A stretch of 64,000 nucleotides of DNA, taken from sequence record OQ790161.1; one strand, given 5' to 3'. This document shows, piece by piece, positions 36,034-47,643 of this stretch. Both the position numbers and the translations under genes were made by a program. The first letter of the stretch is position 1. Each line of letters begins with the position of its first letter. The notes under the pieces were generated by a model. It saw only the letters and a list, made by a program, of their open reading frames with translations. It had not been told where the DNA came from and made no database searches.

Positions 36034-38826
36034 ATGAAGAACACCCGCATCGCCGCGCAGCTGCGCAGCCTGTCGCTCAAGCCGTCGTTGGAAAGCGATG
36101 AGCAGAGCACCATCGAGACCGGCCCGGACGGCGAAGGTGTCGTCAAGCAGAAGCTCGACGAAGACGCCGCTTCCCCGAACCAGACCACCGAAGAAACCAC
36201 CCCGGCCGAAAACAAGGACCTGACGACCACGACCACCGAAGTGGGCGAGCGTTCGGAACTGGAAAGCGCCGAAACCACCGCAGCTGAAGACGGCGAAAAC
36301 GTCGTGGTCTCCACCGAAGGCTTCAAGGGCGCTTTCAAGGCGTTCGGCAAGACCTGGTCGATCGGCCTGCGCAACATCTTCAACAGCAACCTCGGCATTG
36401 CCAAGGCGTTCGCCAAGTTCGACGTCGAGCAGAAGCGCGAAGCCGAGAAGCTCAAGCAGCAGATCGAGCGCATCGCCGCCCGCATCAACGCCTACCATGA
36501 AGGCGACATCGAAAAGGCCAAGGCCGAAGGTCTGTCGACCGGTCCGGTGAAGGACCTGGACGATGACCAGATGATGGACGCCATCCTGAAGGGCGGCGTC
36601 GTTCCGTTCTACACCACCTACTACGGTCACAAGGTCGAGTCGCTGGAGAAGGAACTGAACGCCAAGCTGAACCAGCTGAACCAGCTGCTCAAGAGCAACG
36701 GCGTGTCGATGGAAGGCGAAGGCGACGAAGGCGAAGGTTCCGAGATCGAAACCGGTCCGGGCAGCGAAGGCGTGGTCAAGGCCACCGTCGATGCTTCTGC
36801 CGAAACCCCCAACCAGACCACCGAAGAAACCACTCCGGTCGAGAACGAAGACGTCACCGCCAAGACCGTGGACGTGGGCGAACGCTCGGACCTGGAATCG
36901 GCGCAGACCGAAATCACCGCCGGCGAAGGCGACGTGGTTGTTTCGACCGAAGGCTTCAAGGGCGCGTTCAACGCCGCCGGCAAGGTCTGGAACGCTCACT
37001 GGAAGTCGATCTTCAAGAACGAAGGCTTCTTCAAGGCCAACAAGCGCATGTCGCAGATCGACATCGATCAGAAGCGCCAGGCTGAAAAGCTGAAGCAGCA
37101 GATCGAAGCGCTGGCTGCGCGCATCTCGGCATATCACGAAGGTGACGTCGAGAAGGCCAAGGCTGAAGGCCTGAGCACCGGCAGCACCAAGCCGCTGAGC
37201 GATGACCAGGTGATCGATGCCGTGCTGAAGGGCCGCATGATCCCGTTCTACACGACCTACTACGGTCACAAGGTCGAAAGCCTGGACAAGCAGTTCCAAG
37301 CCAAGCTGAAGGAACTGGACACCCTGCTCAAGGCGGGCAACGTGTCGGTCGAGTCCTACGACGACGCCGGCGTGGAAGCTGCGCAGGCCTTCGCTGACGG
37401 CGCCGCTGGCGCTGCCGCCGCTGCTGCCCAGGCCACCGAAGGCGGTGATGGTGAGCAAGCTGCTGCCGTGGAAGTGGTCGAAGAAGCGGCTGCTGTGGTC
37501 GAAGACGTCACCGACGCCGTCGATCCGGACGCTGAAGAAGACGCTGCGATCGAAGCCGGCCGTGCCGAACTCGATGGCCTGGACGCCGAGATCGCCGATG
37601 GCGAAGCACACGTCGAGGAATACGAGCAGGCCGAAGCCACCCTGGAATCGCTGATCGAAGCACTGCAGGATGCGCAAGCCTCCGGCGGCCTGACCCGTCA
37701 GGCAGCTCGCTTCGCCACCATCAGCTTCGAGTCGATCGGCGTGCGCCTGACCGGCCGTCCGTTCGTCAACGCCCAGGGCGACAACCTGATGCCGTCGCTG
37801 GAATCGTTCGGCACCACCATGCGCCGTGACGAAGCCACCACCGTGTCGCTGGAAGGCGCCAAGGAAGTGCTGCAGCAGGTCTGGGAAGTTCTGAAGAAGA
37901 CCTTCACCACCATCAAGGACTGGATCGTCAAGTTCGTCAAGGCCGTGTTCGACCAGGGCGAGCGCTACAACCAGCGTGCCGACAAGGTGCTGGCTGCTGC
38001 CGCCAAGGCGGGCAGTGCGCCCAAGTCGCAGACCGTCAAGTTCAGCGGCGCCTCCAAGGTGGCCATCGGTTCGGAAGTCAGCCTGGCTGGCCTGGACGTG
38101 CTGGTCAAGATCGCCACCGAAGCCGGCGTGCGTTCCTCGGATGCTTCCCGTGCCATCATGGCTGCCCGTCAGGGCATGAACAACGCCATGCAGGCGGCCG
38201 GTGACATCGAGAAGGTGCGCGAGCAGCTGCTGAACATCGGCCGTGAGGCTGGTGCCAACGCCGCCGCCGGTGCGTTCCGTTCGGAAGTGTTCAGCAAGGA
38301 CGCCGAAGTCGAAGGCAAGAAGGGCTACTCCACCGACGTGCTGCCGGGTAACATCACCCTGGTCAACGTCGATCCGATGGAAGAAGACAATGCCTTCAAG
38401 GCGATCTTCTACATGGCCAAGGGCGGTCGCGTGACCGTGGTTGCTGATCCGAATGCTGGCGAAGTCAACTCCGAGCAGAAGACCCTGTCGGCGGAAGAAA
38501 TCAAGACCGTGGCCAACAAGGTCAAGGCCGTGGTTGCTGCTGCCGCCAAGTCCAAGTCGGAGCTGAAGGAAGAAGCGCTGGACTTCGGCAACATCAACGT
38601 GCCGGAGAACACCCCGGACGAAGTGGCCAACCTGTTCAAGACGAACGCGAAGTCGCTGGGCAAGCTGCTGCACATCAGCACCGGCTCGATCGCCAAGCTG
38701 CTGAAGTACTCGGTGGGTACCTCCGGTTACTACCTGGACTACGCCAACGCGTCGCTCAAGCAGTACGGCGCCGCCATCGAAGGCGAAGCCACCAAGCCGG
38801 AAGCTGCGGAAGCCGCTGCGGCCTAA
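36034..38826 (+). CDS. Inner-body/head polyprotein (phiKZ gp93-family C-terminal module) with a duplicated N-terminal module
   Basis: At least eight S-x-E sites (SLES, STEG, SMEG, STEG, SVES, SFES, SLES, SLEG); ~212 aa internal duplication. Confidence 0.7.
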   Translation: MKNTRIAAQLRSLSLKPSLESDEQSTIETGPDGEGVVKQKLDEDAASPNQTTEETTPAENKDLTTTTTEVGERSELESAETTAAEDGENVVVSTEGFKGAFKAFGKTWSIGLRNIFNSNLGIAKAFAKFDVEQKREAEKLKQQIERIAARINAYHEGDIEKAKAEGLSTGPVKDLDDDQMMDAILKGGVVPFYTTYYGHKVESLEKELNAKLNQLNQLLKSNGVSMEGEGDEGEGSEIETGPGSEGVVKATVDASAETPNQTTEETTPVENEDVTAKTVDVGERSDLESAQTEITAGEGDVVVSTEGFKGAFNAAGKVWNAHWKSIFKNEGFFKANKRMSQIDIDQKRQAEKLKQQIEALAARISAYHEGDVEKAKAEGLSTGSTKPLSDDQVIDAVLKGRMIPFYTTYYGHKVESLDKQFQAKLKELDTLLKAGNVSVESYDDAGVEAAQAFADGAAGAAAAAAQATEGGDGEQAAAVEVVEEAAAVVEDVTDAVDPDAEEDAAIEAGRAELDGLDAEIADGEAHVEEYEQAEATLESLIEALQDAQASGGLTRQAARFATISFESIGVRLTGRPFVNAQGDNLMPSLESFGTTMRRDEATTVSLEGAKEVLQQVWEVLKKTFTTIKDWIVKFVKAVFDQGERYNQRADKVLAAAAKAGSAPKSQTVKFSGASKVAIGSEVSLAGLDVLVKIATEAGVRSSDASRAIMAARQGMNNAMQAAGDIEKVREQLLNIGREAGANAAAGAFRSEVFSKDAEVEGKKGYSTDVLPGNITLVNVDPMEEDNAFKAIFYMAKGGRVTVVADPNAGEVNSEQKTLSAEEIKTVANKVKAVVAAAAKSKSELKEEALDFGNINVPENTPDEVANLFKTNAKSLGKLLHISTGSIAKLLKYSVGTSGYYLDYANASLKQYGAAIEGEATKPEAAEAAAA
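36112..37350 (+). repeat. Tandem intragenic duplication, period ~633-639 nt
   Basis: IETGP at 36112 and 36745; YGHKVESL at 36622 and 37261; shared PNQTTEETTP, VVVSTEGFKGAF and RI.AYHEGD.EKAKAEGLSTG. Confidence 0.9.
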
Positions 38827-41746: not shown

Positions 41747-41799
41747 CGTCTGTACATTCGGACGTACTGGCCCAATCAATCCACTTTGGAAATATGCAT

Positions 41800-43971
41800 A
41801 TGTCCAACATTGCCCGACACCTCCGCGAACTCGCCGCTGCACGGCGCGTGAGCCAGGAGGCCGCTACCGACCCGACCGTGCAGGGTCAGGAAGGTAACCT
41901 CGACGAAAACGAACTGAAGCAGGTGGCTGATGCCGCCGCTGCCGATGTCGATACCACCGAAACCTCCAGTGCCGACGGCGCTGATCCGACCAATACCGAG
42001 CCGCCGGCTGTTGAGGGCGGTGATGAAGGCGCTGGCGAGCCCGAGGCTGCCGCCGAAGGTGACGCTGCTGCCGATACCGCTCCCCCGGCCGAAGAAGGCG
42101 CTGCTGCGCCGGAAGCGGGCGCTGAAGAAACCCCGGTCGAAGAGATCCAGACCCCGGCTGAAGCCGAACTGGCCCAGATCGATGGTGGTCCCAGTGGCGA
42201 AGAGCCCGGCGCGGCTGATGCCGACCTGAGCGCGGCTGAACCGCCGGCCATCGAAGGTGGCGAAGAAGCTGCGGGTGAACCCGCTGCTGATGCTGGCGCT
42301 GTGGAAGGTGGGGAAGGCGGTGAACTGCCTGCCGCCGACGCAGGTGAGCCGGCCGCCGCTGAGCCGGCTGCTACCGATGCCCCGGTCGTCGATGACGCCG
42401 CGGCCGCTGAAGTGCCCGCCGATGCCACCCCCGACGCTGCGGTGGTCGATGAACCCGCCCCGCCGGTGGCTGACCTGGGTGAAGATGCTGGTGCTGCTGC
42501 CGAACCCAATGCGGCCGACGCTGCCGATACGGCCGGCCCCAAGGAAGCACCTGCTGCAACTCCCGAAGCCGTGGAGAAATCCGATGCGGTGATGGAAGTG
42601 GTCGAACTGACCGAAGCCGCTGCCGAAGCCTCCTCGGCTGAAGAAGTGCTCCAGCAGGCCCGTGGCATCGAAGACGGTCTGACCGAACTGGCCGATACCG
42701 CCGAAGCGGTCAACGAAGCCGGTGGTGTGGACATGCAGTCCTACGCCATGCTGGAACTGGCCGCCAAGGCCATCTCCGCTCCGATGTGCCGTGGCAAGAT
42801 CAACTTCGGCATCTCGATGGAAGGCTTCATCGGTGGCGAGCGTCAGCTGGTGTCGCTGGAAGACATCCAGACCCTGATCGGCGACATGCAGCTGATCCAG
42901 CCGGAACTGGAGCGCGAAGCTCTGGACTCGCTGGACCGCATGGTCTGCTCGCTCAAGGACGCCCTGCCCTCGGCCCGTGAGCGCATCCAAGGCGTGGTCG
43001 CCCGTTCCAAGGCCAAGACCGCCGAGAACAGCGGTTCGATCGAGATGGTGCCGGAACTGCAGGCTGCCCTGTCGGTGAACGGTACCGTACCCGATGACCT
43101 CACCGATGGCCTGTTCGATTACATCGAGCTGGGCAAGTCGCTGGTCAACAGCTACACCCCGGCCGCCTTCCGTGCTGCCACCGAAGCGTCCCTGCTGACC
43201 AACTCCGTCGAGTTCAACTCGGTGGAAGGTTTCTGGGAAAAGGTCGGTCAGCGTATCGACACCGTGGCCGATCCGCGTTGCCTGATCCCGGCCTCGCTGC
43301 TGTCCATCGATCTGCCGGGCGGGCGTTGCCTGTTCAGCGAAGCCGGTGGTGGCGTGGAAGCCTCCAACCCGACCGCAGCCAAGCTGTACGAGTACACCGA
43401 CGGCCTGGTGCCGCTGGAGTCCACCGTGGCGGTGCGTGCGGGTGAAGGTGCCGGTTCCAGCCAGTACAACGCCCTGACCAATGCCAAGATCACCTCGATC
43501 GGCGCTGGCTTCCTGGACGTGCTGGACATGGACAAGATCTGCTGCCTGCTCGAGCAGGGCGGCAAGCTGTGGCCGGATGCGCAAGGCGCCATCCGTCACC
43601 TGCGTGAAGTGCTCAACGGCGCCCCGCAGGACATCGCCCAGATCGCCGGCGGTGATTTCCCGCAGCTGGTCAAGTTCCTGGAAGTGAACTACTCGCTGGC
43701 CACCTGGCCGCTGCTGAACTACCTGACCAACATGGTGTTCACGGCCAATGCCTTCGTCATGCTGGCCGAGCTCTCGCTCAAGGCCACCGGCGAAGTGGCT
43801 GCCGAGCCGGTCGTCGAAGAAGCTCCGCTGGATCCGGTTACCGATGTGGCTCCCGAGTCCACCCCGGAAGTCGATCCGGCTGCCGAACCGGCTGCTACCG
43901 ATGACGTTGCCCCGCCGCTGCCGGAAGAAGGTACCGATCCGTCGGTCTCCGACGAACCGCCGGCCCTCTAA
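41800..43971 (+). CDS. Head protein with a long acidic Ala/Glu/Pro propeptide
   Basis: Start MSNIARHL (41800); ~270 aa low-complexity region, then ISMEG/VSLED and a globular domain. Confidence 0.7.
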   Translation: MSNIARHLRELAAARRVSQEAATDPTVQGQEGNLDENELKQVADAAAADVDTTETSSADGADPTNTEPPAVEGGDEGAGEPEAAAEGDAAADTAPPAEEGAAAPEAGAEETPVEEIQTPAEAELAQIDGGPSGEEPGAADADLSAAEPPAIEGGEEAAGEPAADAGAVEGGEGGELPAADAGEPAAAEPAATDAPVVDDAAAAEVPADATPDAAVVDEPAPPVADLGEDAGAAAEPNAADAADTAGPKEAPAATPEAVEKSDAVMEVVELTEAAAEASSAEEVLQQARGIEDGLTELADTAEAVNEAGGVDMQSYAMLELAAKAISAPMCRGKINFGISMEGFIGGERQLVSLEDIQTLIGDMQLIQPELEREALDSLDRMVCSLKDALPSARERIQGVVARSKAKTAENSGSIEMVPELQAALSVNGTVPDDLTDGLFDYIELGKSLVNSYTPAAFRAATEASLLTNSVEFNSVEGFWEKVGQRIDTVADPRCLIPASLLSIDLPGGRCLFSEAGGGVEASNPTAAKLYEYTDGLVPLESTVAVRAGEGAGSSQYNALTNAKITSIGAGFLDVLDMDKICCLLEQGGKLWPDAQGAIRHLREVLNGAPQDIAQIAGGDFPQLVKFLEVNYSLATWPLLNYLTNMVFTANAFVMLAELSLKATGEVAAEPVVEEAPLDPVTDVAPESTPEVDPAAEPAATDDVAPPLPEEGTDPSVSDEPPAL

Positions 43972-43983
43972 GGGGAATGTACC

Positions 43984-44442
43984 ATGAAACTGAGCGTGGC
44001 CTTTGAGGCCCTCGACAATCAGGAACTGGTACAGGTGATCCGCAAAGAGATTGCTCCGGCACTCTTGGAAGCGGAGGAAGTCGTATTGGCAGCTTCGGCC
44101 GCCAATACCTCGGCCGACCAAACCCTGTGGGAATCGGCAAGCAGCGAAAGCGGTGACATCGCCGTGGGTATGCAGGAGGTCATTACCGAACTGCAAGGTC
44201 AAAACGGTACCGGCGGTGTTTCGCTGGAATCGCTGGCCTTTGCCCAGGTGGCACTGACGGCCATGGGTCGTCGCAGTAACGTTCCGGTGCAGCTGTCCAT
44301 CGCTTCGCTGGAAGACGTTGCTGGAGTCGACAAGGTCCAAGTGAGCACCAACGTGCTGGAAGCACTGACCGATAGCTACACGAACCTGACCGCCAAGGCC
44401 AGTCGTGAAGCCCAACGTCTGGGCGAGCTGCTCAAGCGGTAA
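43984..44442 (+). CDS. Small head protein
   Basis: AFEA, VSLES and ASLED motifs. Confidence 0.6.
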   Translation: MKLSVAFEALDNQELVQVIRKEIAPALLEAEEVVLAASAANTSADQTLWESASSESGDIAVGMQEVITELQGQNGTGGVSLESLAFAQVALTAMGRRSNVPVQLSIASLEDVAGVDKVQVSTNVLEALTDSYTNLTAKASREAQRLGELLKR

Positions 44443-44444
44443 AG

Positions 44445-44489
44445 CGCATAAGTAGAGCCAGAGGGGATCAACCCCTCTGGCTTTATGCC
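44445..44489 (+). terminator. Hairpin, GCATAAG...TTATGCC family
   Basis: gcgcataagt-agagccagagggg-atca-acccctctggcttt-atgcc. Confidence 0.75.
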
Positions 44490-44615
44490 GTTCTACGTAT
44501 TTTGACACTCCGTTCACATTTAGATAATTCTCTACCGATGTGAATGACGATGTGGAGAAGGTATCTCGAGAGACCTTAACTCCATCGTCGTCACCCAACG
44601 AAAGGAGCATTGATC

Positions 44616-44990
44616 ATGCGACTTATCGACCAGCGGCCAATTTCCCATCAGCAACCTTTTCCGCTGATGGTAATGGCCTTGGGAGACTTGCAGCAAGGGG
44701 ATGTGTGTCACCACTACCGCGTAGCACGGAACTACGGCGATCACATGACGGTTGGCGGACCGGAGATCGTGCTATGTAGTGGAGCTGTAGAGGGCGGTAC
44801 TCATGATGGTCTCACGCTGGATAGCGTATTGGCCATTTGCGAGGATTACGCCAAAACCCAGTCGCATGGTTCGCCGAGTATGCGAATGGTTACATCGCAG
44901 TTGCAAGCAGCTCGCAGGCTGTTGGCAGCTGATGAATCGAGTGGGCCCCATCCCACTCATACAGGGGGCGATTCAAGCTTGGCCAATTAG
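44616..44990 (+). CDS. Diverged Tad1-like protein (paralog 1)
   Basis: AAGGAG RBS, ATG 44616, 124 aa; HHYRV...IVLCSGAVEGGTHDGLTLDSVLAICEDY matches the Tad1-family H.Y.I...I.FQ.G....G..G.T.E.LL.I..DRL pattern (recalled). Confidence 0.5.
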   Translation: MRLIDQRPISHQQPFPLMVMALGDLQQGDVCHHYRVARNYGDHMTVGGPEIVLCSGAVEGGTHDGLTLDSVLAICEDYAKTQSHGSPSMRMVTSQLQAARRLLAADESSGPHPTHTGGDSSLAN

Positions 44991-45074
44991 CGTCCGCAAC
45001 CGCTAGTGAGCTAAGACGGGATACTCGGGGCAATACCTACCCTTTCCCAATGTACTGACCAGAGGAACACCATC

Positions 45075-45506
45075 ATGCGCCAGATTTCCAGCCAGAATGC
45101 CCATGGCTCAAGCGCACTTCGCATCACCGCGGACGAAGTTCCCTTCCGTGGTTTCTCAGCCCACCGCTACGTCGTCGAAGGTTTCGACACCAGTGCAAAC
45201 CGGGCTGTCCGCGCGGACGGTTTCGTTCCGCGTTTCCGTGAGCTCTCGATCATCTTTGCGACCGAAGAAGCGGCCAACGATGTCCTCCCGGATGGCGTCA
45301 CCATCGACGCACTGCTGGCCATTGTGGCCGACCACTTGAGTGCCAAGGTCAATGGACCCAACGGCACGATGGGCAAGTCTCTTGCCTTGGAGTACATCGA
45401 AAGCGCGCGTGACGTCCTCGCCCAGGACGCTGTTTCCCACGCCGCCTTCGATACGCCCGTGTTCAGCGGTAACGCTTTCCAGCGTACCGGCACCGGCGCT
45501 CTGTAA
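45075..45506 (+). CDS. Diverged Tad1-like protein (paralog 2)
   Basis: LRITADE...SAHRYVVEGFDTS...IIF......LPDGVTIDALLAIVADHL...GP......ALEYIESA follows the Tad1-family consensus (recalled). Confidence 0.65.
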   Translation: MRQISSQNAHGSSALRITADEVPFRGFSAHRYVVEGFDTSANRAVRADGFVPRFRELSIIFATEEAANDVLPDGVTIDALLAIVADHLSAKVNGPNGTMGKSLALEYIESARDVLAQDAVSHAAFDTPVFSGNAFQRTGTGAL

Positions 45507-45512
45507 ACAGAG

Positions 45513-45549
45513 GACATGACCCCCACCCTACGGGGTGGGGGTTTATGCC
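45513..45549 (+). terminator. Hairpin, TTATGCC flank
   Basis: gacatga-cccccaccc-tacg-gggtggggg-tttatgcc. Confidence 0.75.
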
Positions 45550-45571
45550 GTCGATTTAGTGGATTGAAAGC

Positions 45572-45666: not shown

Positions 45667-45855
45667 ATGAACGAGAACACCAAGTCCACCATCAAGTCCA
45701 TTGCCAAGAACGTCGGCATCTTCGCAGCTTCCTTCACCGTCACCTACCTGGTGATCAAGGGCGTCCAGAAGGTGGCCGAGCAGATGTCCGGTGAGGTCAT
45801 CATCCTCGAGCCGGTCGCCGGCGTCAGCGAAGTGATCGTCGACGCGGTCGGCTAA
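45667..45855 (+). CDS. Small single-TM protein
   Basis: GAGG RBS; VGIFAASFTVTYLVI hydrophobic helix. Confidence 0.7.
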   Translation: MNENTKSTIKSIAKNVGIFAASFTVTYLVIKGVQKVAEQMSGEVIILEPVAGVSEVIVDAVG

Positions 45856-45866
45856 GCAACGTCCCT

Positions 45867-45898
45867 GGCCCTACCCTCCGGGGTAGGGCTTTTATGCC
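45867..45898 (+). terminator. Hairpin, TTATGCC flank
   Basis: gccctaccc-tccg-gggtagggc-ttttatgcc. Confidence 0.7.
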
Positions 45899-45953
45899 AC
45901 ACAACCCATCGAGAGTCGTTGACTCTTCCATTCTCTCTCTAGAGGTACTCGTA

Positions 45954-46715
45954 ATGTCCAACAAGCTCAAGACCCTGATCATCACCAACGCTGTCGCCAT
46001 CCGTCTGCTGGACATTGCCGGTAACTCTGGCATTCTCCACCATGATGTCCACGGCACCCACGACGAAGGCGTCGATGGTCTGTCCATCTCCCATGAACAT
46101 CCCGAACATGGCCCGCAGGTCATGCGTGCTGACCGCATCAGCGAGAACTACTTCAACGTCACCTTCACCGGCAGCCCGGACTACCTGAAGTCCATCGGCG
46201 TCAACGGCTGGACCAGCAGCATCGAAACGCTGTTCCAGTATCTGGGCAATGTCGATCGTCGTCTGCTCGGTCTGACCGAGGAGTTCGTCAGCGTGGCCAG
46301 CGAAAACATCGTGCTGTTCAGCACCAACGATGAAGTGTTCGGTGCGCAGGAAGGCGTGCATGAACTGGAGCTGCTGCTGCATCCGATCAGCACTGCGGTC
46401 GATGCGTTGCTGGAAGGTGCTGCCGAGGAAGTGGCAGAGATCGTCCAGCCGGCTGCTGAAGAACTGCTGCGTATCGCCGAGTCGGCCGTCCAGGAAGATG
46501 AGATCCGCGCCGAAGAAGCCCAGGCTGATCCGGCCCCGGAAGCCGAGCAGGTGGCCGCTGAAACCACCGTGGCCGGTTTCGGTCAGAAGGTGCGCAAGTT
46601 CATCAGCTCCCCGTGGGGCGTGGCGGTTGGTACCCTTGCAGTCACCAGTCTGGTGGCCGGCGGTATCTGTCTGCTGCGTAACAAGGCTGGCGTGGATTCC
46701 ATTCCCGAAGCCTAA
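45954..46715 (+). CDS. Acidic protein with C-terminal membrane anchor
   Basis: ATG 45954 with GAGG RBS; WGVAVGTLAVTSLVAGGICLL near the C-terminus. Confidence 0.7.
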   Translation: MSNKLKTLIITNAVAIRLLDIAGNSGILHHDVHGTHDEGVDGLSISHEHPEHGPQVMRADRISENYFNVTFTGSPDYLKSIGVNGWTSSIETLFQYLGNVDRRLLGLTEEFVSVASENIVLFSTNDEVFGAQEGVHELELLLHPISTAVDALLEGAAEEVAEIVQPAAEELLRIAESAVQEDEIRAEEAQADPAPEAEQVAAETTVAGFGQKVRKFISSPWGVAVGTLAVTSLVAGGICLLRNKAGVDSIPEA

Positions 46716-46732
46716 CCCACGATTCAAAAGAG

Positions 46733-46758
46733 TTTCAGAAACATACTGTCATGGTGAA
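46733..46758 (+). promoter_or_regulatory. Putative phage promoter TTTC-N7-TACT-N7-TG
   Basis: TTTC agaaaca TACT gtcatgg TGAA. Confidence 0.55.
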
Positions 46759-46819
46759 GTCGGGCACAACTAAATCAAACCGGCTTCATCTCACCCCAGT
46801 CCAATCTACGAGGTTTACC

Positions 46820-46951
46820 ATGTTCAAGAACATCAAGCCTGAAACGAAAGCCGTGATCGCCGAAACTGCCCGCGTGGCCCTCGGCATCTCGGTGGTGGTC
46901 ACCGTGTCGATGTGCATCAAGAAGGCCGTCGAGAAGGCGGTCGGCGTCTAA
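46820..46951 (+). CDS. Small single-TM protein (43 aa)
   Basis: GAGG RBS; VALGISVVVTVSMCI. Confidence 0.65.
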   Translation: MFKNIKPETKAVIAETARVALGISVVVTVSMCIKKAVEKAVGV

Positions 46952-47010
46952 CTGACGCCACCCTCTCTGCGGTACTGCAACACCATCCCTCGACTTCCAA
47001 GGTAACGATC

Positions 47011-47139
47011 ATGTTCAAGAAGCTCCTGCCCCAGTCCGAAATCGGCAAGCTGTACCTGGCTTCCTTCACCGTTGGTACGGCCATCAGCCTGACCATCGCC
47101 GTCACCCAGACGGTGGTCGGCCGCGTCCTGTACCGCTGA
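47011..47139 (+). CDS. Small single-TM protein (42 aa)
   Basis: AAGG RBS; LYLASFTVGTAISLTIAV. Confidence 0.6.
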   Translation: MFKKLLPQSEIGKLYLASFTVGTAISLTIAVTQTVVGRVLYR

Positions 47140-47288
47140 CCCCCGCCGTGCTCATCCGAGGCGAAAGCTCTCCTCGGTACGGCACCCAGGAGAGACCCAT
47201 GGGATCTCCCTTCCAAGATTCATTCCGCCGCAAACCGCCGGGTCACAACCGACCCGGTCCAATCCCCAATAGCGAGAAGACCAAAACC

Positions 47289-47643
47289 ATGAACCAGAAC
47301 AACGCCGAAACCATCGACCTGACCAACGCCGAAGCCGTCGCTGCCCATGCCGAGAGCCTGCGCCGCCAAGGCCAGCGAGATGGAAGAGCGGCTGCGCGTG
47401 CTGCGCGGTGAAAACGATGCGGCTGCCGTCGGCGGTCCCATCAAGAAGCCGCAGAGCCAGGCCGTGAAGACCGCCAAGAAGATCACCGGCTGGGCCCTGG
47501 GCGTGGGCGTGGTCACCCTGGGCGGTGCCTACCTGTACAGCCGTCTGCGCGCCGCTGGCGTGAACGTGCCGGACGGTGAAGCTGTCGGTGCCGCCGTCGG
47601 CGATACCGTGGCCACCGTGGTCGACGCCGCCACCGGCGGCTGA
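47289..47643 (+). pseudogene. Membrane-anchored protein interrupted by a +1 frameshift at ~47364 (or sequencing error)
   Basis: MNQNNAETIDL...ESLR then an extra C; continues AKASEMEERLRVL...WALGVGVVTLGGAYLY in the next frame. Confidence 0.55.

Follow-up and report, generated by a model that had tools for sequence, protein, structure and literature searches.

Which proteins do two adjacent open reading frames (ORFs), here named ORF A and ORF B, encode at positions 44616–45506 of a 64,000-nucleotide stretch of phage DNA, and can these proteins still capture the immune signals for which Tad1, the family they resemble, is known? The stretch (hereafter the window, meaning the whole of the DNA that was analyzed) corresponds to positions 1–64000 of OQ790161.1, the record of Xanthomonas phage RTH11, with 100% identity; the record is circular and 312,199 bp long. 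Tad1 (Thoeris anti-defence 1) proteins are small phage sponges, normally hexamers, that sequester glycocyclic ADP-ribose (gcADPR), cyclic dinucleotides, and cyclic trinucleotides. Our analysis indicates that A and B are very probably members of the Tad1 superfamily that have lost the known ligand pockets. We give about an even chance to the fuller reading, in which the two genes form a transcription unit of divergent Tad1 paralogs that have been re-specialized as signal sponges and that possibly co-assemble. The two ORFs are as follows.

44616–44990, plus strand: ORF A, 124 amino acids (aa), WJJ54917, labelled hypothetical protein in GenBank OQ790161.1; assigned here as the faster-evolving Tad1-superfamily paralog, with the canonical ligand pocket lost.
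45075–45506, plus strand: ORF B, 143 aa, WJJ54918, labelled hypothetical protein in GenBank; assigned here as the strongly constrained Tad1-superfamily paralog, with the canonical pocket lost.

We compared the two proteins with each other and with Tad1 using single sequences and family profiles; the B-family profile was built from a 17-member alignment. ORF A matched ORF B in BLASTP with an E value of 2e-5, and hhalign of the two family profiles gave 92% with an E value of 6.6e-7. The best solved match of the B-family profile was phiKZ gp184 (PDB 8Y6V chain I; E = 5.6e-7 over gp184 residues 101–213), and the solved Tad1 of a Clostridium botulinum prophage (CbTad1) was matched with an E value of approximately 0.008. 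The best annotated phage match of ORF B was Agrobacterium phage OLIVR5 gp79c (tblastn, 1e-7; 32% identity), which itself matched gp184 (2e-19), CbTad1 (5e-15), and CmTad1 (1.6e-12). OLIVR5 gp79c is labelled "ABC transporter ATPase", a misnomer that it has in common with PDB 7UAV. When single sequences were searched against the PDB, A had no match and B matched only gp184, with an E value of 0.27; the A-family profile on its own had no match in the PDB.

A HMMER scan with the B profile against 1.84 billion representatives detected 283 proteins at E ≤ 1e-3, from which 44 standalone canonical relatives were drawn and aligned with OLIVR5 gp79c to give the set A5. The A5 profile matched gp184 with an E value of 1.7e-30 and CbTad1 with 4e-25, and we therefore regard A5 as a bona fide Tad1 set. 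In hhalign comparisons with A5, the B family gave 99.8% (E = 1.4e-28) and an A family of 8 members 98% (E = 1.5e-13). Applied to the 646 ORFs from all six frames of the window, the A5 profile picked B (2.6e-21) and A (8.6e-4) and no other. Because A and B show mutual homology and this profile selects just the two among 646 ORFs, their resemblance is far beyond chance.

The structures predicted for A and B both consist of an N-terminal antiparallel β-sheet followed by two C-terminal helices. The AlphaFold2 model of A had a mean predicted local distance difference test (pLDDT) score of 84.1, with strands at residues 2–4, 17–21, 33–39, and 44–53 and helices at residues 68–82 and 87–108; the model of B had the same order of elements. 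In a Foldseek search of the PDB with the A model, the top 20 matches were all Tad1 (CbTad1 and CmTad1), with template modelling (TM) scores of 0.60–0.69, and the next match had an E value above 1. Matches of the A model in BFVD were Acb2/Tad1-hairpin proteins. An earlier note on this DNA had described the two products as highly diverged Tad1-like proteins, and the profile, hhalign, and Foldseek matches, all of them to Tad1, bear this out. The residue skeleton that it had proposed for the pair is present in both proteins, except that one position in the last helix of A deviates.

Do A and B keep the residues with which Tad1 binds its ligands? In CbTad1, gcADPR and 2′,3′-cyclic GMP-AMP (2′,3′-cGAMP) share a pocket that uses F82, N92, R109, and R113, and at the interface of the trimer of dimers R90 and T97 hold cyclic trinucleotides (Li et al. 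preprint). Binding was sharply reduced in the CbTad1 double mutants F82A/N92A and R109A/R113A and in the single mutants R90A and T97A; the gcADPR/dinucleotide site is substituted in only 12% of Tad1 homologs, and the trinucleotide site in 6% (Li et al. preprint). We took the contacts from that paper, transferred the CbTad1 numbering to OLIVR5 gp79c and RTH11 B by HMMER alignments, and surveyed 178 aligned domain sequences, comprising 6 of the A family, 22 of the B family, and 150 other superfamily members. None of the four residues of the gcADPR/cyclic-dinucleotide quartet was kept in any sequence of the A family (0/6) or the B family (0/22). In the other superfamily members, each position was retained in 68–87% of the sequences, and the full quartet was present in 88 of the 178 sequences. 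The residues at the four positions were as follows.

F82: kept in 109 of the 150 others; K, L, Q, R, or I in B; Q (L in one) in A.
N92: kept in 123 of the 150 others; K (Q, L, or P in four) in B; V in A.
R109: kept in 130 of the 150 others; D or E (G or A in one each) in B; no basic residue after R101 in A.
R113: kept in 102 of the 150 others; variable in B; no basic residue after R101 in A.

Neither Arg nor Lys occurs in residues 113–136 of B or in residues 102–124 of RTH11 A, so the two helix-2 arginines are missing in both proteins under any alignment. The MAFFT superfamily alignment placed helix 2 of A one turn off the pairwise and profile alignments, and the loss of R109 and R113 in A was therefore judged by the absence of basic residues. 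At the two trinucleotide contacts, B has M, Q, or L in place of R90 and E or D in place of T97, and A has R or H at R90 and neither T nor S at T97; these positions vary among other superfamily members as well. The earlier note had held that the fold positions are kept and the ligand contacts replaced, differently in each copy, and the survey of the 178 sequences confirms this. A fringe of other superfamily clades likewise has noncanonical pockets.

The residues that each family conserves instead were examined in the family alignments. Among the 17 B sequences, R16, R25, H30, R31, Y32, and a Gly-Phe-Asp-Thr turn are invariant, and the arginine-rich loop between strands β3 and β4 (residues 42–55) is nearly all invariant, including R43, R46, R53, and R55. 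In the canonical relatives this loop has the same length as in B and a variable sequence. The C-terminal tail of B is conserved and is predicted to be disordered. In A, the β3–β4 loop is shortened and few charged residues are invariant; C31, Y34, C75, E76, D77, and R101 are among its 23 invariant positions, a set to which two cysteines and, on helix 1, an acidic pair belong. Both proteins are acidic overall, as is canonical Tad1. On helix 2 the two share a derived pattern, which in A reads A99/R100/L103/A104/D106 and in B reads A111/R112/L115/A116/D118. Its diagnostic residues, Arg at position 112 of B combined with Asp or Glu at position 118, occur in no other member of the 178-sequence set. 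Helix 2 bears hexamer-interface residues in solved Tad1 (Li et al. preprint), and its hydrophobic interface positions are changed in both A and B.

An A-family gene lay directly upstream of a B-family gene in all eight distinct genomes with upstream DNA, namely RTH11, its near-identical metagenomic relative L011, and L004 (LucasX), L006, L008, L013, L014, and L016. The tandem pair described in the earlier note is thus a conserved unit. In L014 (positions 1980–2438), the A homolog had been missed by the gene caller of the source, which left an apparent gap of 650 bp; the ORF is intact. The canonical Tad1 loci are single-copy, as found in OLIVR5, Burkholderia phage FLC9, the phiKZ-like phage PA7, and six IMG/VR contigs, and a scan of IMG/VR gave one further B-family locus only. 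Another tandem pair of Tad1-like genes was observed on a distant contig (L009:2844–3787). Its downstream member, P0027, has the equivalents of N92 and R109 and not those of F82 and R113, and judged from these residues it may represent an intermediate stage of pocket loss.

Between RTH11 and L011, the ratio of nonsynonymous to synonymous substitution rates (dN/dS) was 0.08 for B (12 synonymous and 3 nonsynonymous differences) and 0.42 for A (8 synonymous and 11 nonsynonymous differences). Across the related genomes, with the same genome pairs compared for both proteins, identity was 39–59% for A and 50–67% for B. These values indicate that B is under strong purifying selection and that A evolves faster. 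Chance ORFs were rejected as an explanation of A and B, since both have homologs, both show these dN/dS values, and both are picked by the A5 profile. The pair likely originated by tandem duplication, but an old one, as suggested by the adjacency of the genes and the shared helix motif.

Is the pair also a transcription unit of its own? The signals around and between the two genes are as follows.

44457–44490, plus strand: terminator of the upstream gene, consisting of a hairpin at 44457–44481 (10-bp stem, 5-nt loop) followed by TTTATGCCG at 44482–44490; 5′ boundary of the pair.
44513–44527, plus strand: AT-rich block downstream of the terminator and upstream of the leader, kept in related loci and unique in the window.
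44551–44583, plus strand: conserved 5′ leader block upstream of ORF A, with consecutive alignment columns invariant in 7 loci and a small predicted hairpin.
44602–44607, plus strand: ribosome-binding site (RBS) of ORF A, AAGGAG, purine-rich, 8 nt before the ATG and kept in related loci.
45061–45066, plus strand: RBS of ORF B, AGAGGA, purine-rich, 8 nt before the ATG.
45510–45550, plus strand: terminator closing the pair, with a core stem at 45520–45541 followed by TTTATGCCG at 45542–45550.

Both terminators were detected by folding and alignment and not by a terminator scanner; the scanner for sigma-70-type promoters and intrinsic terminators gave no match. The stem of the upstream terminator shows compensatory changes in an upstream-spacer alignment of seven related loci. 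In related phages, the tail after the upstream hairpin is nearly unchanged despite differing stems. The hairpin after ORF B has a folding energy (dG) of −30.2 kcal/mol and a z-score of −4.7, and none of 200 shuffled sequences folded as well. The 84 nt that separate A from B do not fold into any significant structure (z-score, +0.64), and there is no terminator between the genes. The nonamer TTTATGCCG occurs twice in the window, only after the upstream hairpin and after the hairpin 3′ of ORF B. Because the two bracketing hairpins carry this nonamer, which is found nowhere else in the window, we conclude that the pair is a terminator-bounded two-gene unit apart from the upstream head genes. From its position and conservation, we infer that the AT-rich block is a candidate phage-specific promoter. 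In the leader, the predicted helix is mostly kept with little covariation, and the exact motif is unique in the window; it is possibly a putative promoter for a phage RNA polymerase or a putative regulatory RNA. The earlier note had assigned an RBS to each ORF and a single hairpin to the end of the pair; both RBSs and a strong hairpin after B were recovered, and its coordinates proved exact.

A and B were then compared with known members of the superfamily. They resemble CbTad1 (PDB 7UAV, 7UAW, 8SMD, and 8KBE–H) and CmTad1 (8KBB–D) in having an antiparallel sheet with a two-helix hairpin, a length of about 125–145 aa, an acidic composition, and a standalone architecture. Of the structural positions that are invariant or almost so among the canonical relatives, both keep several: an aromatic residue on strand 3, a glycine preceding helix 1, and Leu-Ala-Ile at the core of that helix; B also keeps the Gly-Pro between the helices. 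Unlike CbTad1 and CmTad1, they lack F82, N92, R109, and R113 as well as R90 and T97, apart from the Arg or His of A at R90. They further differ from canonical Tad1 in their changed helix-2 interface, in their obligate tandem arrangement where canonical loci have one gene, and in falling below the threshold of PF24729. OLIVR5 gp79c, which belongs to the canonical proteobacterial Tad1 clade, resembles B in its length, the length of its β3–β4 loop, and its strand-3 motif. Unlike A and B, it has the full pocket quartet, is single-copy, and lies in a replication/recombination neighborhood. Acb2 (anti-CBASS 2), a hexameric sponge, shares the helical hairpin (Pfam Acb2_Tad1_hairpin) with the Tad1-like pair. 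Membership of A and B in Acb2 was rejected, as there was no Acb2 among the structural matches with E below 1 and no sequence match; the two proteins are Tad1-like and not Acb2-like.

The record of RTH11 is annotated with split RNA polymerase β subunits, virion structural proteins, and an internal head protein, and a 930-aa protein encoded at 36034–38826 matches the Pfam family phiKZ_IP (6e-35); RTH11 is therefore a phiKZ-like jumbo phage. The closest solved relative of B, gp184 of the Pseudomonas phage phiKZ, has the same kind of origin. It is a minor capsid protein of the vertex-binding complex and a substrate of the head protease. It has been called Tad1, its N-terminus being wedged in the capsid and its C-terminal part being liberated and injected at the next infection, and until recently it was the sole anti-defence protein described in jumbo phages. 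With 230 aa, gp184 combines an N-terminal part built into the capsid with a C-terminal Tad1 domain, whereas A and B start directly at the Tad1 domain. At the four pocket positions, gp184 has the canonical residues, as read from the alignments, and A and B have none. For the gp184 homolog of phage PA7, the first 100 residues matched neither the window nor an upstream 152-aa ORF, and this ORF was accordingly rejected as a split-off N-terminal domain of gp184.

N-terminal additions were also observed in other relatives. About one third of the listed superfamily matches are 170–455 aa long with the Tad1 domain at the C-terminus, as in gp184 (P0036, P0038, P0054, P0104, P0120, P0133, and others). 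Gp131 of Burkholderia phage FLC9 (LC667451.1; L003:3377–4393) is a 338-aa protein in which a cyclophilin-type peptidyl-prolyl isomerase (PF00160, 2.5e-44) is followed by a C-terminal Tad1 domain, a canonical one with the full pocket quartet. By analogy with gp184, N-terminal extensions, possibly for packaging, may be common in the superfamily.

What might the pair do? Under the sponge reading, A and B would still be cytoplasmic counter-defence sponges, directed to a different small-molecule signal. The ligand of B would be held at a new or relocated anion-binding site composed of R16, R25, H30, R31, and Y32 together with R43, R46, R53, and R55 of the loop. The two proteins may co-assemble, as they share the derived motif on the helix that forms the oligomer interface of Tad1. 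A role as a sponge for a noncanonical signal has a chance slightly short of even. A hetero-oligomer of A and B is a more tentative proposal, suggested by the shared helix motif. The complete model, a hetero-oligomeric sponge whose pocket is rebuilt from the B loop and the shared helix-2 motif and which captures an immune signal of Xanthomonas-like hosts beyond the known ligands of Tad1, Tad2, and Acb2, appears unlikely in all its parts at once. There is a precedent for such changes: sponge families change their ligand specificity, and of 84 homologs that had been tested, 19 did not inhibit any of seven systems.

A number of results weigh against the Tad1 assignment or against the sponge function. 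A and B had no match in Pfam even at E values up to 10, PF24729 (Acb2_Tad1_hairpin) included; a distant relative, P0018, scored 19.9 bits against PF24729, for which the cutoff is 27. No match of A or B was found in PADLOC or NCBIfam, and in PHROGs B alone had a weak match (E approximately 1e-3) to an unnamed family. The B model had a mean pLDDT score of only 64.8, and its top 20 Foldseek matches in the PDB, although all Tad1, had TM scores of 0.32–0.43. The Foldseek comparison with Tad1 structures that the earlier note had proposed thus supported A, with exclusively Tad1 matches, and left B poorly superposed. Tad1 relatives made up most of the 115-sequence superfamily alignment from which the A model was derived, and the fold match of this model is therefore not fully independent of the sequence evidence. 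The mean identity of A to B was 21.9%, compared with 20.5% of A to the other relatives, so there is no measurable excess of similarity between A and B; the word "duplicated" used for the pair in the earlier note keeps the support of adjacency and of one shared derived helix motif and loses that of overall similarity. The genes adjoin those of inner-head proteins, and the phiKZ homolog is associated with the capsid, which makes a virion-related role possible. Finally, with both known pockets completely lost, the proteins could just as well have given up nucleotide binding altogether.

In the main rival reading, the Tad1 fold has been kept as an exapted scaffold and the sponge function lost, the proteins serving in protein–protein contacts, for example as virion or inner-body accessories or as direct inhibitors of a host protein. 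We consider it rather unlikely, even though all known ligand contacts are gone in both paralogs and the genes lie directly 3′ of phiKZ_IP-type head protein genes in every relative. The capsid location of gp184 also favors it, but A and B lack the extension of approximately 100 residues that anchors gp184 in the capsid, and none like it was found in the window. The annotation of several homologs in Bacillus phages as structural and the conserved C-terminal tail of B, predicted to be disordered, likewise count in its favor. However, the pair forms its own terminator-bounded unit apart from the head genes, and the eight family-invariant arginines and the aromatic residues in the acidic B resemble a small-anion site more than a protein interface.

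At the other extreme, A and B could still be canonical in function, binding gcADPR or the cyclic oligonucleotides of the cyclic-oligonucleotide-based antiphage signaling system (CBASS) by substitute contacts, with the pair doubling dosage or breadth. The clear Tad1 homology, the Arg or His of A at the trinucleotide-binding position R90, and the literature finding that the dinucleotide spectrum of Tad1 homologs varies through variable loops are consistent with this. Such binding is nevertheless highly improbable, given that the double mutants of the CbTad1 pocket and the single mutants R90A and T97A markedly reduce binding, and that in A and B all four pocket residues are replaced, with the charge at R109 even inverted in B, which has D or E there. 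T97 is kept in neither family, and the hydrophobic interface positions of helix 2 are changed. It is also quite improbable that B alone is functional and that A is a decaying or purely regulatory duplicate surviving through the shared transcript. A does evolve faster (dN/dS of 0.42 against 0.08, and identities of 39–59% against 50–67%), has a shortened β3–β4 loop with few invariant charged residues, and was overlooked by one gene caller. However, A is intact with a conserved RBS in 8 of 8 genomes despite deep divergence, keeps 23 invariant positions including the two cysteines and the acidic pair of helix 1, and gives a confident model (pLDDT, 84), and its dN/dS, calculated from 19 substitutions, still indicates constraint.

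The earlier note had called the pair a candidate for a new system. This was overstated, as jumbo phages are already known to carry a Tad1, the gp184 of phiKZ, and Tad1 homologs with pocket substitutions have been reported as a minority (12%). A limited literature search gave no report of pocket-less Tad1 paralogs encoded as an obligate tandem pair. Sponges have repeatedly opened the way to new bacterial immune signals, Tad1 to gcADPR and a Tad2 homolog to histidine-ADP-ribose (His-ADPR). A whole clade in which all four gcADPR/dinucleotide contacts are replaced, and which is yet selected as an obligate pair, is a concrete place to seek a new ligand or a new use of the fold. If the complete model of a hetero-oligomeric sponge is true, the pair would offer a way to a new signal, just as Tad1 led to gcADPR. 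If A and B act in counter-defence, they would be perhaps only the second anti-defence candidate described for jumbo phages, after the Tad1 of phiKZ, and if they are a structural exaptation, they would be an example of a counter-defence fold that has been recycled.

The gene order around the pair is syntenic in the relatives, with internal head protein paralogs and an acidic protein of about 720 aa upstream and small hydrophobic proteins downstream. The internal head protein genes directly upstream of the pair are of the phiKZ_IP type in every relative, and the neighboring proteins on either side had no family matches, the internal head proteins excepted. A literature search gave no article on phage RTH11. 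Downstream of the pair, at 45667–47643, lie five small ORFs (42–81 aa according to the record, the first three with hydrophobic segments) and one ORF of 253 aa; they had no family matches and stand in the same order in related phages. In RTH11, the upstream acidic protein has 723 aa (41800–43971, plus strand) and no family match, and its N-terminal half is a long, acidic, low-complexity region rich in Ala, Pro, and Glu. An antisense ORF of 944 aa (41776–44610, minus strand) extends over the region of this gene and appears to be a by-product of composition and not a gene.

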